Shown one piece after another: positions 17,101 to 38,100 of a stretch of DNA of 64,000 nucleotides. Both the position numbers and the translations under genes were made by a program. Position 1 is the stretch's first letter. Each line of letters starts with the position of its first letter. Source of the stretch: Haliotis rufescens (Eukaryota); assembly GCF_023055435.1 (NCBI RefSeq), contig NW_025963780.1, positions 39,370,001-39,434,000 on the forward strand. The letters are read 5' to 3'. The notes under the pieces were generated by a model. The model made no database searches. It worked only from the letters and a program-made list of their open reading frames with translations, and was not told the origin of the DNA.

Positions 17101-20100
17101 AGGTATGGAGTCGTTAATGGTAGTTATATAGACGATTAGAAATGCAGGCTGATAACACAATCGTTCCTGATTTTAATATATCTAGTTGTGGTGGTATTCA
17201 AGTCGGTAATGGTTGTTTAAGAGGAGGAAATGGTAGTGACCTAGACACTGCCTGAAACAGCCAGACACCTCCCCGTGCTAAAGATGGGTCACTCTCCCTG
17301 TTAGACTCTACAAATTACATTAACTGAACCAGACTCATCTAGACACAACCAGTGTCATCCAAATACAACCAGACACATCCAGACACAACCGGAATCAGCT
17401 AGTCAAAGCACATCTATCCATGCTGAAGATCTCTCAGATAGCCACGCCATAGGACCACGCGTCACTCTCTCAACAGGCGGCATTAAGAGAACCTGACTAA
17501 TCTAGACACAACCAAAGTCATCGTGACACAGTCGGAACCAGACATAACTATGTATATATACCCGGACACAACCACACCCATCCCAACTCAACCCGATAAA
17601 GCCAGACACCACCCACACTGAAAATCTCCCAGTCACTTTCCTCGTTGGACTCAACAGGAGAAATCAAAAGAACCAGATTGATCCACACACATCCAAGTTC
17701 ATCCAGATGCAACCAGCCATATCTAGACACAACCAGAAACAGCAAGACCCAGCCAAACACCTACCCATGCTGAAGATCTCCCAGATTGTCACACCATAGG
17801 ACCACACGTCACTCTTCTCGTTAGCATCCTTGAAGGACCTCAGACACTCTGGGGCTGTCCATTTGATGGGGATGCGGTCCTAAATCGCAAACAAGAAATA
17901 TAAGTAAAATACCTAAGGGGTATGATTGAAGGTTATTGAAAACATGATACTATTGTCGACATTTTAGGAAACATGAATATTCCAGACCAGTTTCTATATG
18001 AACACATAGACACTACAACTTTATGTTACTAATGAACCAATGTGATTATGTTGAGACAGAAACCAGGATGCATCATGCTGCACACTTACCCCTTTGGCAT
18101 CATCAGCAGACTCATCAGCCTTGCTTGGGCCACATCCAGTCACCTTGATCTCCAGCAGGAAGGTCAGCAAACAGTTACGTGCAGCCAATTTACGGTGAAC
18201 GATCTGAAGAAACACCACAACAGCACTCGAAAATATTCCAAAGATATACCGACTCAATAGATCATTAACGTCGATCCATGCAATTTGGATACGATGATAT
18301 GCTAGCAACAAAGTCCCCGAGCCTGTCCACCCAATTCATTTGATCACCTCCGGAGACAAGCATTGGATACTTTTACCCAGAACATCTTTACCCCACTAAC
18401 TCCCCTCTCCCTCATCCGGTCGAATCCTCAGGTTAGAGGAATATTGTTGTATAAAATCGCACTACAGCGTGTTGGGTAGCCATGGCACACATACTACATA
18501 CACACACCTTCTTGGACGCCAGATACTCCATGGCACGAGCGATGTCCAGGGCGAAGTTCTGTATCCTGTCCAGGGTGTCCTCATTGATGTTTGATCTCTG
18601 CTTGGTCAGCCACTTGTCCAGTTGGCCAATCTCGCAGTACTCCAGCACCATGACGGGGCCCACTGGGTGAGATCAAAGGAAGACTCAGACACATGTTATA
18701 CAGACAGACACCAAACACACACACATATACATATACAACACACACACACACACACACACGCACGGACGCACGCACGCACGCACGCACGCACACACGCACG
18801 CAACCCGATGCACGTGAGTTCCGTGAAAATTGAAATGCACATGCATTCCCCCATTTCTTGCCCTATACAAATCCACCCAGATCGGATAACATTCATTCGT
18901 AATTGAATTGCTGTCACATGCATGTTATTCTGGCAGACACCAAACAGATATACATGTGTCTTTGTTCTTCTGAAATTGTTACTTCCAAATATTCTTCTAG
19001 CTTACATTCCAGTAGTTATATGGACCACTTGATATACGAAACCAAAGGTCGTGTTTTGAAAATTATGATGCTGATTTCTACTCACGCGCCTCGTTCTCCA
19101 TGACAGCCCCAAGGAAGCCCAACAGGTTCGTGTGTTTGCCCATCTGAGTGGCAGCAAAGTTGATCTTAGCCAGCATCAGCAAGATGTCGTCCTGACTCTC
19201 CCTCACTGGGGAAACACAGATCGACATATTGATTGAATATCAGATGAACTTATTTCACAGTAACGAACAACACCAACAATACAGAACAAAACATTTGAAT
19301 ATATTTCAGAGTGTTATTTTACACGATTTACCTTTGAGAACCTTCGCAACCACATTTTGGACGTTCTTGGGTGTCTCCATCCACTTGGCAGTGTAGATCC
19401 TGGCAAACTTGCCGGTTGCGATGACCTCGGTAAGGCTGATGTCCTCGGGGGGAATGTACCAGGGTTCCCCAAGGTCCATGCTGCCGTAGATGTAGATGTC
19501 GTCGTCCTTGTTGTATGTCGTGTTCTGATGCAAAGTTGGAATGTTGTATAAACCCACCATACTTTAAAGTTTAGGAAAATTGCTATAACACAAAAATCTG
19601 TTCTCACTTTGGTTTCGAAACTGAAATCTATTTTATATTTGGTAATATATAAGAAAATGTATTCAGTAAAAATATCCAAGGCGGTAGGATGCATTCACAT
19701 CTCTAATCAAATGAGAGTAGTGCAACTATGTATGACAAATACTAATCTTACATCAAACGCCCATCTACTCCTGCGGTCGTTCCGTTTGAAGCCCGTTGTT
19801 TGTCCTGTTGAGGTCGCAACACGGGGTCGTTCTCTGTAAGTGTTTCGACGCCCGAGGAGTCCAGCCAATAACCCAAGTTTGAACAGAATCAGGCCCACAA
19901 TAACGAGTATGAGAGCGAGCAGCAACAACATTCCTGGACAAAACAAAACAAAAATCGCTCATTACGTTCAGCTGCTATGAATCTTGTGTATAAATTTGTA
20001 ATTCTTCTTACATACAAAAATTCCCAAACAAACTACTGGCAAGCAAACTTGATTGTTGTGAAACAAAATGCAAGTATGTTTTATGAGAGATGATATGAAT

Positions 20101-35100: not shown

Positions 35101-38100
35101 TCACTCGGACTGCTTGATAGAAACTGGAATCCTGATGAACAGTCACAGTTGACACTGGCGCCTGAGGTACAGCTCCCGGGGAAACAGGGCCGCACGTAGT
35201 TACATACCACTGAAATAATACAAAACAAATACAGAACCAGATGACATGTTTAAACAGATATTGGGGCTGATCATTAAGAGTTGGTCAGTTTCCTGTAATT
35301 CAATTTCTCTCATACTTCAAACCTATCGTTTGATTGATTGGACCGGAACAAAAGGTCATCTGGGAGGTTGATTTGCAATTGTATTTCAAGGTCGGCACTT
35401 ACCCAGAAGTGCCATCAAAACTCCATCCAGTCCGGCAGCCCTCTAACCCTTCCCAAAATCACTTTGTACCCATGGGGTGGTAGGTTCCGGGAACGGACCT
35501 TCAGATTTTACTTAGTTAGATCCAGGATATATGACTTGTGATGATTAATATGGGACAGGATCTGCAGAATTTGGATAAGTAACTCCAGTCGAGGACTTTC
35601 AAAATGGTAGTGCATGCACACGTGTTATGGACAGATCAATGACAGAATCTTCAGAGTTCAATTGTAAACTAAAGAATGTAAACTTGAGAAATTGTACTCC
35701 CCAGGAAAGGACGTTAGATTGCAGAATTGCCATCAGGTAAACTTGAAGGTAGGTCCTGCTATAATTGGGATGATGACCTCTAGGATACAACCTGATTATT
35801 TTGTATACAAGATCCAGGAAAGAACAGGTATATGTACTTCAAAACCAGTCCTTCACTGGAAAAGCTCCATAAACTTCAGGCTATTGCGACCTGCAGACCT
35901 GGTATTGTAAGCTGAATGACAGGATCATAAGAATGGTTTATTGTGAATAGTAAGTAGAGGATATCTACCTGCCATACCTGTGATAGTAATCTCTGGGGTA
36001 GTATATGCAGATTGGGATCTGTGAGCTTCAGTTCAGTTAAGTAAAAGTGCCAGGTGACGAATTGTGGCAATCTCAAAATAAAGGACCTGCACGTAGCGTT
36101 GGTCTTTGATAAACGCGCGAGCAGGCATATTTCAAAAACATGTCATAAAATGGAGACCGATTTTGAAGATGAAATAACTTTCAGTTTGCAGTGGCTGAAG
36201 AGAATTCGAGAGTCTCGTCTCTTTAGTCCTTGCCAGTGTAACGGATATAGTTTTGCTTGAAGGATATGGCCTTAGCATTGTGCACACAGTGACATTTCTG
36301 ATTGTAAAATTTTCCCTGTCATGGCAACAGGCGTCAGTTCAAAAGATCAGGCAAAACCTTGTCCTTTAGAAAATAACTGATTTCCTCACTGTGAATCTTC
36401 TGTAGTGTCAGTAAGAATTCAATTCACTTATGAAAACAATTGCAGTAAATATTTCACTATTTTAAGTGTATCCTGCTATTGGTTTTACCCATATATGGAG
36501 GTTGTAACAATATTGCATTAACGATACGTACACGTGTTGCACGTCGGTCCTATAGCTCCATCATTACACTGACAGCAGTTGGGTAGCACACAGGTACCTC
36601 CGTTCCGACAGGAAGGGTTGCAGATTGCTGGAAATACAATACCAAACTTATACATTACTCTCACTGCGGCCTGACCGAAATACAAACCAACAATAAAAGA
36701 CGTATATTAACGACAGCATGCATGTTGCAAGTTTTTGGTAATTTTATTCGATTTGGAATTGCCACGATCCTCACAAACTTCAGTCAATGAATTATGCGCT
36801 TGTGAGAAGTTACGCAACAAAGTGTGATAACGTGGTACAAACAGGGACCAGACTTACGTCGGTTACAGTTCTGGTAAGAGGAGGTTGTCCAGCCCTTGCA
36901 GCAGAAATATTGCACCCGATAATCCGGCACCCAGTACCATCTCCATGCGCAGCAGCTGAACAAAGGAAGCAGAATACCGTCATATTGATGACAAGAATAA
37001 TTATACCACATGCTAAGGTACAGGCACTGTAAGGTTTCAATTTTTTGTCATCAGTATATATAAAGCAAATATTTTGATACTGTTAATATACTATAAACCA
37101 TTAATAGAGCAAGGTGCTGCAAACGCTAGGAATGTTGTGTAGGGATAATTTAGGGTGTAATCAAAGTAAACTATTGAAACAAATAATGAATTAATTTGCA
37201 GGTTATTTTTCACCATATAACAAATTATGTGAATGATTGTTATCACATGCACAGGGTGCACTTACCCCAGCCACGTCCGATACACACATCGCCGCTCACG
37301 TCTGTAACTACAGATTGTACGAGAACAAACCTGTCTGAAACAAAGACGTATAGATAATGAATGTCAAGGTTACACTCAATACTCATGTATACTAAACACC
37401 AAATACTTATCTTATTGTGACGAGGAAATAATAATTAAAAAATCGAAGTTGGAATATATTTGTGATAATGAAAGTTGAATTCATAGAGCCACAAAAGACA
37501 AGATTAGACAAGACGTTTATTGTTTATAAGTTTTCTGGTACGTGTATAAAGCTAATTTTGTTAACAGAAATAATATTTTTATTACTAAAAGCACACCAAT
37601 AAACAAAACATCACCGGCGGCACTCTTCACAAACACAAGCAAGGCAAGTGACGTGTTCACCTGGACAAAGACGAGAACACATTTTGGATGTCAACTGAGT
37701 GTTTGAATGGCGTTTCCTAGATAACACAATTTATGGAGAAAATTCGTATTGTTATAGCGACGTTTCGGTATAGATCATCATCATCATTAAAGTGTTCTAG
37801 CGTCCACTTCAGAAAGTTTTAATTCGTAGACTTGATCAGGTGCGTTTACATAAAAAAAGACATCGTGAAAAGTCGTATTAAAAAAACTGTATCACAGGGA
37901 AAAACTTTGTGTGATACATTTAGGGTTAGTTGCCAAGAGTTAGCTCTGTTTCATTTCATACGGACGCTATATCTCTCACTCTTACTCCTGATTGTCCTAC
38001 CAGCAGTATCTCGTGCAGATACCTGGGGTGTGACGTGGAAACTTTCAAATGCCACTTATGTCACGTCTTTCCCTCGACTCATCAATTCATGTTTATAATT

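Follow-up and report, generated by a model that had tools for sequence, protein, structure and literature searches.

A 64,000-nucleotide stretch of the Haliotis rufescens genome (RefSeq assembly GCF_023055435.1, contig NW_025963780.1, forward-strand positions 39,370,001 to 39,434,000; the whole stretch is hereafter the window, and its positions are used throughout) carries a multi-exon gene on its minus strand that encodes an intact, transcribed type I membrane receptor, in which a glycosylatable, disulfide-rich, all-β ectodomain is connected by a single-pass helix to a conserved dead kinase. Open frames between 37330 and 19752 encode an EMI-like domain, two EGF-like domains, a long part that had no assignment, one FN3 domain and the membrane helix; the first EMI exon starts at 37334, and the membrane-helix exon ends at 19752. 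We hold this architecture, taken by itself, with high confidence.

The exon order follows from protein alignment, for which exons were searched one by one; whole-protein analyses used database proteins (P0001, P0193 and their relatives). In tblastn searches all residues of the H. asinina protein P0001 (1243 residues, "uncharacterized protein") were collinear on minus-strand exons running from 49552 or 44693 to 14048, with no stop inside the aligned exons, and the gene spans 35 kb. The H. rufescens RefSeq product P0193 (1244 residues, LOC124142642, "uncharacterized protein") fell in 19 pieces on the same exons as P0001, seven of which were 100% identical, the lower identities of the remaining pieces arising because those pieces extend into introns. 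We take P0193 to be the public model of the window's own gene. Two signal-peptide first exons were aligned by tblastn of P0001, one at 44622..44693, with exactly whose peptide P0193 (RefSeq isoform X1) begins, and an alternative at 49481..49552 (MKIHFFLLVVLLGMLVDISVQWSG), into whose codons a transcript contig described below runs. P0193 has the general build of a receptor tyrosine kinase, with a hydrophobic N-terminus, a single strong hydrophobic window from residue 869 and a PK_Tyr_Ser-Thr match at residues 965-1224 (E 8e-65), and its residues 25-860 hold 9 N-x-S/T sequons and 31 cysteines. At E ≤ 0.001, Pfam assigned fn3 (residues 774-851) and the kinase (965-1224) and nothing else, leaving 621 residues (153-773) unassigned, close to the ~620 given in an earlier note on this DNA. 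Searched exon by exon, Pfam returned fn3, EGF_2, a weak kinase start and chance-level rows on the large exon. The protein strings from which that note had read an EMI/EGF start followed by repeated β-strand modules were all recovered in minus-strand frames, near 37330, 36900 and 36600, in the 24790-24098 exon, at 23897-23715 (HFDDTPP), near 23150 (LDMESG) and near 22800 (FVNMAG).

Modeling shows the unassigned ~620 residues as four different predicted all-β sandwich domains, here termed A to D. An AlphaFold2 model of P0002 (a Gigantopelta protein of 888 residues comprising the ectodomain and the start of the membrane helix), built on a 141-row family alignment, had a mean predicted local distance difference test score (pLDDT) of 88.3 and a predicted template-modeling score (pTM) of 0.67, consisted of nearly all strands and displayed clear domain breaks. 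With unit limits read off the strand pattern of the model, the P0002 ectodomain comprises an EMI-like long hairpin (residues 25-64), two small EGF units (80-150), domain A (158-345), domain B (376-465), domain C (470-625), domain D (630-760) and FN3 (767-861). In the window, domain A occupies three exons, 34522..34822, 32479..32613 (which carries both invariant cysteines) and 26623..26844, the last of which also encodes an A-B linker with two cysteines and has its ends from the protein match only. The largest exon of the gene (24098..24790, 231 codons) encodes domain B, most of domain C and the family signature, and was placed by protein match and near-invariant columns. The last strands of domain C (...HFDDTPP) and the start of domain D lie at 23715..23897 (tblastn and the P0002 model), the middle of domain D at 23054..23209 (tblastn, ends approximate), and its cysteine-rich insert and last strands (NCW...FVNMAG) at 22755..22943 (tblastn). 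The membrane-proximal FN3 (21897..22163) is followed by a short exon directly before the membrane helix (20125..20181), which gave a weak tblastn piece (E 2.4) and whose peptide is present in P0193, and by the exon for the helix itself and the start of the juxtamembrane part (19752..19934, tblastn), which corresponds to the strongest hydrophobic window of P0193.

The earlier note had suggested Ig/FN3-like folds for the modules after the EGFs, and both the β sandwiches of the P0002 model and the structure alignments agree with it. The FN3 domain was matched by Pfam fn3 on the window exon (E 5e-9, 36.7 bits vs the cut-off of 25), and its counterpart in the P0002 model aligned with fibcon (3teu) at Z 14.6 and a root-mean-square deviation (rmsd) of 2.3 over 93 residues. 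Strings of two, three and four FN3 domains aligned to P0002 residues 629-856, 470-858 and 347-859, with aligned lengths of 168, 257-262 and 343, respectively; the rmsd of these alignments is 6.9-18.7 Å because domain angles differ. These alignments, which span several domains and not each domain singly, support a reading of B, C and D as likely FN3/Ig-like sandwiches. With the whole P0002 model as query, both Foldseek and VIA-align returned generic FN3/Ig strings, dominated by matches to the FN3 domain; those listed by Foldseek (gp130, leptin receptor, fibronectin and complement MG domains) had a template-modeling (TM) score of ~0.15. Domain B passed the Pfam Big_3_2 threshold (PF12245, cut-off 23.3) in two relatives, P0055 (39.9 bits) and P0125 (23.9 bits), and Big_13 was matched in 3 of 29 relatives; the window exon stays below every Pfam threshold, and the likeness to Big_3_2, Big_13 and filamin-type Ig domains is at the level of fold only. 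Internal repeats were rejected as an origin of the ectodomain, the hhalign probability being ≤ 5% in all 10 profile pairs of A, B, C, D and FN3.

Domain A (~215 residues) was also folded alone, as P0001 residues 153-370 with 45 alignment rows, giving a pLDDT of 91.4, a pTM of 0.85 and nine long strands; its cysteines C266 and C281 (P0001 numbering) are invariant in the family alignment. The best structural matches were PDE delta (Z 7.7, rmsd 3.2 over 126 of 141 residues), RhoGDI (7.0-7.3), RbmA (7.1), CPE0147 adhesin repeats (7.0-7.5) and the arrestin-like VDUP1 (6.7-6.9). No chain reached Z ≥ 8 among 48,161 representatives or Foldseek's top 999, and no Foldseek match reached E ≤ 0.001, the list being led by RhoGDI and UNC119 (E ~1e-3, TM 0.33-0.49). 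Domain A thus appears to be an enlarged Ig-like sandwich with no close solved relative. RhoGDI, PDE delta and UNC119 are its closest structural likenesses (Z 7.0-7.7), but these scores are below 8 in a flat list (rank 50 at 5.9-6.2) at 6-12% identity, and domain A differs from these proteins in being ~70 residues longer, extracellular, glycosylated and disulfide-bearing; the resemblance to lipid-binding sandwiches may serve as a lead only.

The 267-residue stop-to-stop frame around the largest exon had one chance match (E 3.3) to the sequences of solved structures, and P0001 matched kinases only, at residues 942-1241, with no ectodomain match among the 60 matches listed. A profile of domains B-C (41 rows) found nothing below E 0.1 among solved structures, the best being a TRIM45 filamin domain (E 0.11) and 2yn3_A ("putative inner membrane protein", E 0.26), which we take to be Salmonella SiiE. 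In the ESM Atlas, the largest-exon frame and domain A retrieved only unnamed mollusc clusters and generic fn3/Ig clusters, with scores of up to 0.95 and up to 0.88, respectively. Within the ectodomain, conservation peaks in B and C, with the motifs W.GW.D..SG...Y, D.ANN...RR...YD, W..HF.N..H, DD.EG.RT..AI.N..GIV.F and WVRA.D..GN, and domain C holds the most conserved motifs of the family. Mean pairwise identity among 11 full-length mollusc members is 49% in EGF1, 47% in the kinase, 44% in EGF2, 41% in B, 36% in EMI, 35% in C, 28% in each of A and D and 26% in FN3.

The same module recurs widely. A HMMER search of 1.84 billion representatives with the 267-residue frame yielded 309 proteins at E ≤ 0.001, 138 at ≤ 1e-10 and 37 at ≤ 1e-30, numbers far beyond chance, and many family proteins are collinear with P0001 end to end at 32-41% identity. 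The module is joined to a kinase in gastropods (five Haliotis species, Gigantopelta, Nucella, Babylonia, Littorina and Batillaria), in bivalves (Solemya, Ylistrum, Argopecten, Pecten, Mizuhopecten, Crassostrea/Magallana, Mya and Dreissena) and in the hemichordates Glandiceps talaboti (P0125, P0142) and Ptychodera flava (P0120, P0132), in all four of which Pfam confirmed the kinase. It also occurs in kinase-less models, some of them partial, from the crinoids Antedon and Anneissia, from Acanthaster, Saccoglossus and Branchiostoma, and from Lingula, Lottia, Pomacea and Saccostrea; one Lingula protein contains two copies. Judged from this distribution, A-D is probably an ancient invertebrate module, and it has no name. 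Source names were collected for 30 proteins and, from further searches, for 20 and 10 rows. Each either calls the protein "uncharacterized" or "hypothetical", carries an automatic label ("FGFR", "Receptor protein-tyrosine kinase") or refers to a generic domain, as in "EGF-like domain-containing protein", a pattern that bears out the earlier idea of an uncharacterised receptor family.

Some of these proteins raise the question of whether the receptor is mainly a cell-adhesion molecule, a rod of sandwich domains binding a like or unlike molecule on a neighboring cell or in the matrix, with the dead kinase as an anchor. The A-D module heads giant, FN3-rich, kinase-less proteins of 2,100-3,400 residues in amphioxus, starfish and Saccoglossus, a build found in matrix and adhesion proteins, and the whole-ectodomain model matches strings from contactin, NCAM, sidekick, LAR and fibronectin. 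Such string matches, however, are generic to any string of sandwich domains (TM ~0.15). Among the 11 full-length mollusc members only EGF1 is more conserved than the kinase fold, whose ratio of nonsynonymous to synonymous substitution rates (dN/dS) is 0.14-0.17 among neighboring abalone paralogues, a degree of conservation that argues for a specific signaling role. We consider a mainly adhesive function unlikely, while ranking it first among the alternatives.

The N-terminal head brings in a second alternative, that of a phagocytic or scavenger receptor of the Draper/MEGF10/Nimrod type that gained a pseudokinase tail. The EMI-like domain is encoded by two exons (37266..37330 and 36858..36955, both found by tblastn and with spliced joints described below) and has eight cysteines within 55 residues, ending FCCKGW. 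An EMI cysteine framework ends CC.G[WY] just ahead of an EGF; here FCCKGW is followed by the ...NCNRPIC of EGF1, and the columns align with the Pfam-detected EMI segment of the Antedon relative P0114. Pfam EMI (PF07546, cut-off 25 bits) was found neither on the two EMI exons (E ≤ 1) nor on P0001 (E ≤ 0.1) and came just below threshold in 2 of 29 relatives, both from Antedon (P0114, 23.0 bits, and P0146, 18.1 bits; model positions 1-68 of 69). The EMI-like start proposed in the earlier note therefore holds as to its cysteine framework and lacks Pfam support in abalone; on sequence grounds "EMI-like" seems a fair label, without the Pfam threshold that membership in the EMI family would carry. 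EGF1 (36532..36627) was matched by Pfam EGF_2 on the window exon (E 3e-4, 21.5 bits vs the cut-off of 22.1), as were 10 of 29 relatives at E ≤ 0.1 (best 3.9e-14). EGF2 (35087..35209, tblastn) has six cysteines and no Pfam match on the window exon, and two short hairpins occupy the matching place in the P0002 model. A homologue search with the EMI-EGF head returned only Haliotis relatives (10 of 39 candidates) and is uninformative on EMI relatives beyond the family.

The abalone receptor resembles Draper, MEGF10, PEAR1 and Nimrod in its N-terminal EMI-type cysteine domain with CC.GW and in the EGF of the form C.P.C.NGG.C..P..C.C directly after it; Pfam EGF_PEAR1L was weak on the window EGF1 (E 0.072) and present in 4 of 29 relatives (best 4.4e-5), and the tandem expansion to at least 22 copies described below is seen in many invertebrate recognition receptors. 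In Draper, MEGF10 and Nimrod, a long EGF/NIM array follows the EMI domain, and the tail is a short one of the NPxY/ITAM type with no kinase. In contrast, the abalone protein has only two EGFs and no Pfam EMI match, its four sandwich domains and FN3 make up ~75% of the ectodomain, its tail is a kinase fold of ~260 residues, and dN/dS is below 1 in all domains, giving no sign of diversifying selection. Membership in the Draper/MEGF10 group was rejected on the two EGFs and the kinase-fold tail, and we regard descent from such a receptor as improbable. The scavenger or phagocytic role put forward in the earlier note, which rests on the EMI and EGF resemblance only, gained support from no test. Tie receptors, which likewise place EGF-like and FN3 domains on a tyrosine-kinase fold, were also compared. 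They have the order Ig-Ig-EGFx3-Ig-FN3x3 and an active kinase. Tie2 FN3 domains 1-3 aligned with the P0002 stalk at Z 12.4 and rmsd 16.3, no better than other FN3 strings in the list, and Tie membership was rejected because the abalone protein has no Ig match, one FN3 by Pfam, a dead kinase and another domain order.

The cytoplasmic part of the gene (14048..19524, tblastn) encodes a juxtamembrane tyrosine motif, the kinase fold and a YYY tail. P0193 has HRK in place of HRD and GCG in place of DFG, and none of 65 kinase-bearing relatives retains the Asp at either position, the HRD variants being HRR, HKR, HRK and others and the DFG position being mostly GFG; six hemichordate sequences have HRK at the HRD position. 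The VAIK lysine is kept in 61 of the 65. With the catalytic Asp absent at both HRD and DFG, the protein is therefore a pseudokinase, as the earlier note had it. PTK7/CCK4, ROR, RYK and ErbB3 are likewise type I proteins with a kinase fold that has lost catalytic residues yet is conserved, and the conserved cytoplasmic tyrosines of the abalone receptor could be docking sites. Ectodomains of the known receptor pseudokinases consist of Ig domains, of Ig, Frizzled and Kringle domains, of a WIF domain, or of L and furin-like domains. The abalone ectodomain is unrelated to these, and its family, unlike theirs, is expanded to at least 22 copies in one genome.

Names attached to relatives point elsewhere, to a fibroblast growth factor receptor (FGFR). 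The UniRef name of the H. diversicolor protein P0190, 82% identical, is "Fibroblast growth factor receptor", the labels "Fibroblast growth factor receptor 2" and "FGFR2-like" are attached to members from an oyster and from Mya, respectively, and FGFR kinase domains are among the best solved-structure matches (~1e-40). An excerpt of PMC11275868 cites a 2015 master's thesis on an H. diversicolor "FGFR" and growth traits; its link to P0190 is unverified. Solved-structure matches, however, are confined to residues 942-1241, where an EGFR chain (2e-58), a Src-Abl ancestor (6e-45) and RON (1e-41) stand above FGFR2 (3e-40), and no full-length match to a characterised receptor tyrosine kinase family, the outcome that the earlier note had named as fatal to its proposal, was found among them. 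An FGFR ectodomain has two or three Ig-like domains with an acid box. The ectodomain order here is quite different: P0193 has no Pfam Ig domain, the 25 commonest of the 46 families found in 29 relatives include no eukaryotic Ig family, and the catalytic Asp is missing in 65 of 65. We rejected FGFR membership because Ig domains and catalytic residues are both lacking and because, judged by search scores, the kinase seems no nearer to FGFR than to other kinases, and we give the reading behind these names next to no credence.

Transcript evidence comes from contigs of four public runs (X1, X2, X4 and X11; RNA presumed) placed on 32400-37400, in which we found five skips of intron length, each bounded by CT..AC (GT..AG when read on the minus strand). 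The joint 36955>37266, from EMI exon 2 to EMI exon 1, occurs in all four runs; EGF1 is joined to EMI exon 2 by 36627>36858 (run X1), EGF2 to EGF1 by 35209>36532 (run X4, shorter side 21 letters), domain A exon 1 to EGF2 by 34822>35087 (runs X1 and X4) and domain A exon 2 to exon 1 by 32613>34522 (runs X1, X2 and X4). A loose contig end at 32479 translates into the start of domain A exon 3 (26844), and another at 37335 (run X1) gives LVDISVQWS, the peptide with which the 49.5-kb signal-peptide exon ends. The earlier note had made its proposal depend on the EMI/EGF exons being joined to the kinase exons, and the spliced contigs and the RefSeq model connect them with the rest of the gene. That an EMI/EGF gene and a neighboring kinase-receptor gene were read as one is suggested by the 35-kb spread, the 5-kb satellite and transposon remnants in introns and the lack of any single contig spanning the gene, and is countered so strongly by the spliced joints from EMI through EGF1 and EGF2 to A, the loose end that continues into the next exon, and the identical order end to end in independent gastropod and bivalve gene models and in three neighboring paralogues, that we dismiss it. 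Other contigs spliced to the first EMI exon (37329-37335) end INLSLQWSGN, DLSIQWSGN and IHLSVQWSGN, none an exact match to either signal-peptide exon of the window; these endings may come from additional first exons, from alleles or from transcripts of paralogues with a likeness of ≥ 95%. A sixth skip, in run X2 alone (33444>33511), covers 66 bases, has TT..AA ends with other letters between and is intronic.

The product of the largest exon has 36 matches at E ≤ 1e-5 in the H. rufescens genome, 22 of which cover at least 219 of the 231 residues without stops. These 22 intact copies comprise the window gene itself, three copies less than 250 kb away that are 83-88% identical to it, a second tandem cluster of fifteen on both strands (C2:20.74-21.69 Mb) that are 43-48% identical to the window's, two at C2:45.6-46.0 Mb and one on C556. 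The three near-neighbor paralogues are complete in ectodomain exon order. Comparison of the window gene with these three gave dN/dS values of 0.11-0.68 in every domain with enough codons, showing that every domain is under purifying selection, with no decay and no diversifying selection; diversifying selection on domain A in particular was rejected, its dN/dS being 0.14-0.30.

Synonymous divergence (dS) separates head from stalk among these four genes. Between the pair formed by the window gene and neighbor 1 and the pair formed by neighbors 2 and 3, domain A has an identity of 0.57-0.59 and a saturated dS of 1.8-2.4, and the EGFs have a dS of 0.8-1.0; within each pair, domain A is 0.90-0.91 identical with a dS of 0.09-0.15. 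The stalk (B-C and D-FN3) has a dS of 0.14-0.37 in all six pairs. High dS in the heads and low dS in the stalks thus point to old head types that sit on stalks exchanged or homogenised recently. Neighbor 3, P0195 (LOC124142650, 873 residues, G000:C2:39615327-39645005), carries the second head type; its domain A is 54-59% identical to that of all 10 other Haliotis proteins (five species), and its B-C part is 88% identical to the window gene. P0195 runs from the signal peptide to FN3 and ends 14 residues past it, and the next 15 kb of its locus contain neither a membrane-helix exon nor a kinase exon; by its predicted sequence it is a soluble ectodomain paralogue. In the window gene, read-through of the donor after the FN3 exon (21882-21897, minus strand) yields GNNRN and then a stop, resembling the natural end of P0195 (GNSFSVREAFEE). 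Retention of that intron would give a soluble isoform of the window gene too.

We propose that the ectodomain is a long multi-domain stalk holding an N-terminal head (EMI, EGF, EGF and A) off the membrane. The head most likely sets binding specificity, existing as at least two old sequence types that are combined with near-identical stalks in neighboring genes, and the stalk (B, C, D and FN3) would most likely be a spacer and perhaps a receptor-pairing surface, domain C having the most conserved surface motifs. Signaling would be non-catalytic, as in other receptor pseudokinases, with the dead kinase and the tyrosines of the juxtamembrane part (DDIYIYG) and tail (NYYY) serving as a scaffold phosphorylated by a partner kinase, and the P0195-type paralogue that ends after FN3 may act as a soluble competitor. 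We favor this overall picture of head, stalk, non-catalytic scaffold and soluble competitor with some confidence, and hold any particular physiology, whether immune recognition, adhesion or growth control, to be doubtful in each case.

Several points weigh against the picture just given. No single contig spans the whole gene and none joins the EMI exons to the kinase exons, a link that rests on the RefSeq model together with collinear models from many species; the runs are only presumed to be RNA, their contigs are short, and the EGF2-to-EGF1 joint comes from a single contig whose shorter side has 21 letters. The structural models are of relatives' proteins (P0002 is ~42% identical, and the P0001 part ~78% identical in domain A), and the Ig/FN3-like nature of B, C and D rests on multi-domain alignments at rmsd 6.9-18.7 Å and on Pfam matches in relatives. 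Values of dS above ~1.5 are saturated, and the mosaic could have arisen by gene conversion of stalks or by swapping of heads, either of which fits. Of the 50 relatives whose kinase domain is complete, 29 have the juxtamembrane [DE]..Y.YG motif and 43 the acidic-[FY]Y tail, counts that are inflated by near-identical oyster entries and loose patterns. The functional steps are inferred throughout.

Repeats and mobile-element remnants lie in the noncoding part of the locus. The intron that separates domain A exons 2 and 3 is filled by a noncoding 31-base satellite (27140..32146, repeat analysis) with ~159 copies at 71-77% matches and higher orders of 62, 93 and 291 bases; the open frames running through it are repeat artefacts. 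Tc1/mariner-type transposase remnants lie in introns of the gene at 42523-43655 (minus strand; HTH_Tnp_Tc3_2 1.4e-8, DDE_3 3.5e-7) and 20450-21077 (minus strand; HTH_Tnp_Tc3_2 8e-10), and the intron next to the kinase exon 17879-17763 holds a degenerate copy of that exon (17419-17514, minus strand), which is 50% identical to it and contains three stops. Upstream of and between the two signal-peptide exons, at 45800-48200 and 51200-60300, are long arrays whose minus-strand frames repeat KKQAALHTQDRRNKQPYIHRIEETSSPTYTG, with a strong AT skew of -0.58 to -0.62.

In the literature search, which did not extend to supplementary kinome tables, no description of the ectodomain or the family was found, and six accession and locus names matched no paper. 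Five oyster tyrosine kinases are termed "TK-unique" in an excerpt of PMC4883820, whose S1 Table could list family members; the part of PMC8662651 at hand does not mention molluscs, and that of PMC9936805 lists a different "FGFR3-like" protein. The gene itself is already catalogued in RefSeq. New here are the division of the 620-residue gap into four sandwich domains, the extension into deuterostomes both of the module and of its combination with the dead kinase, the head/stalk mosaic and the soluble paralogue. On a more speculative view, to which we assign a low probability, A-D would be an unnamed extracellular module of ~600 residues that predates the protostome/deuterostome split and was fused to the same dead kinase in the mollusc/hemichordate ancestor; molluscs would have made of it a recognition repertoire of old heads (EMI, EGF and A) shuffled onto homogenised stalks, with soluble paralogues as competitors, and domain A would represent a new type of large sandwich whose ligand pocket is like that of RhoGDI or PDE delta.

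To our knowledge, receptor pseudokinases are few, and each known one has been instructive on signaling without catalysis. The abalone gene belongs to a large family of such receptors whose ectodomain lies outside the family libraries, conserved from molluscs to hemichordates and tandem-expanded in abalone, and its candidate binding module is also found at the head of giant extracellular proteins in amphioxus and echinoderms. The "FGFR" names on some of its relatives are wrong, which matters for aquaculture genetics, where an abalone growth-trait study perhaps concerned one of these relatives (a link that is unverified). The domain limits, motifs, head/stalk division and natural soluble paralogue described here should ease ligand hunting and knock-down in this family.

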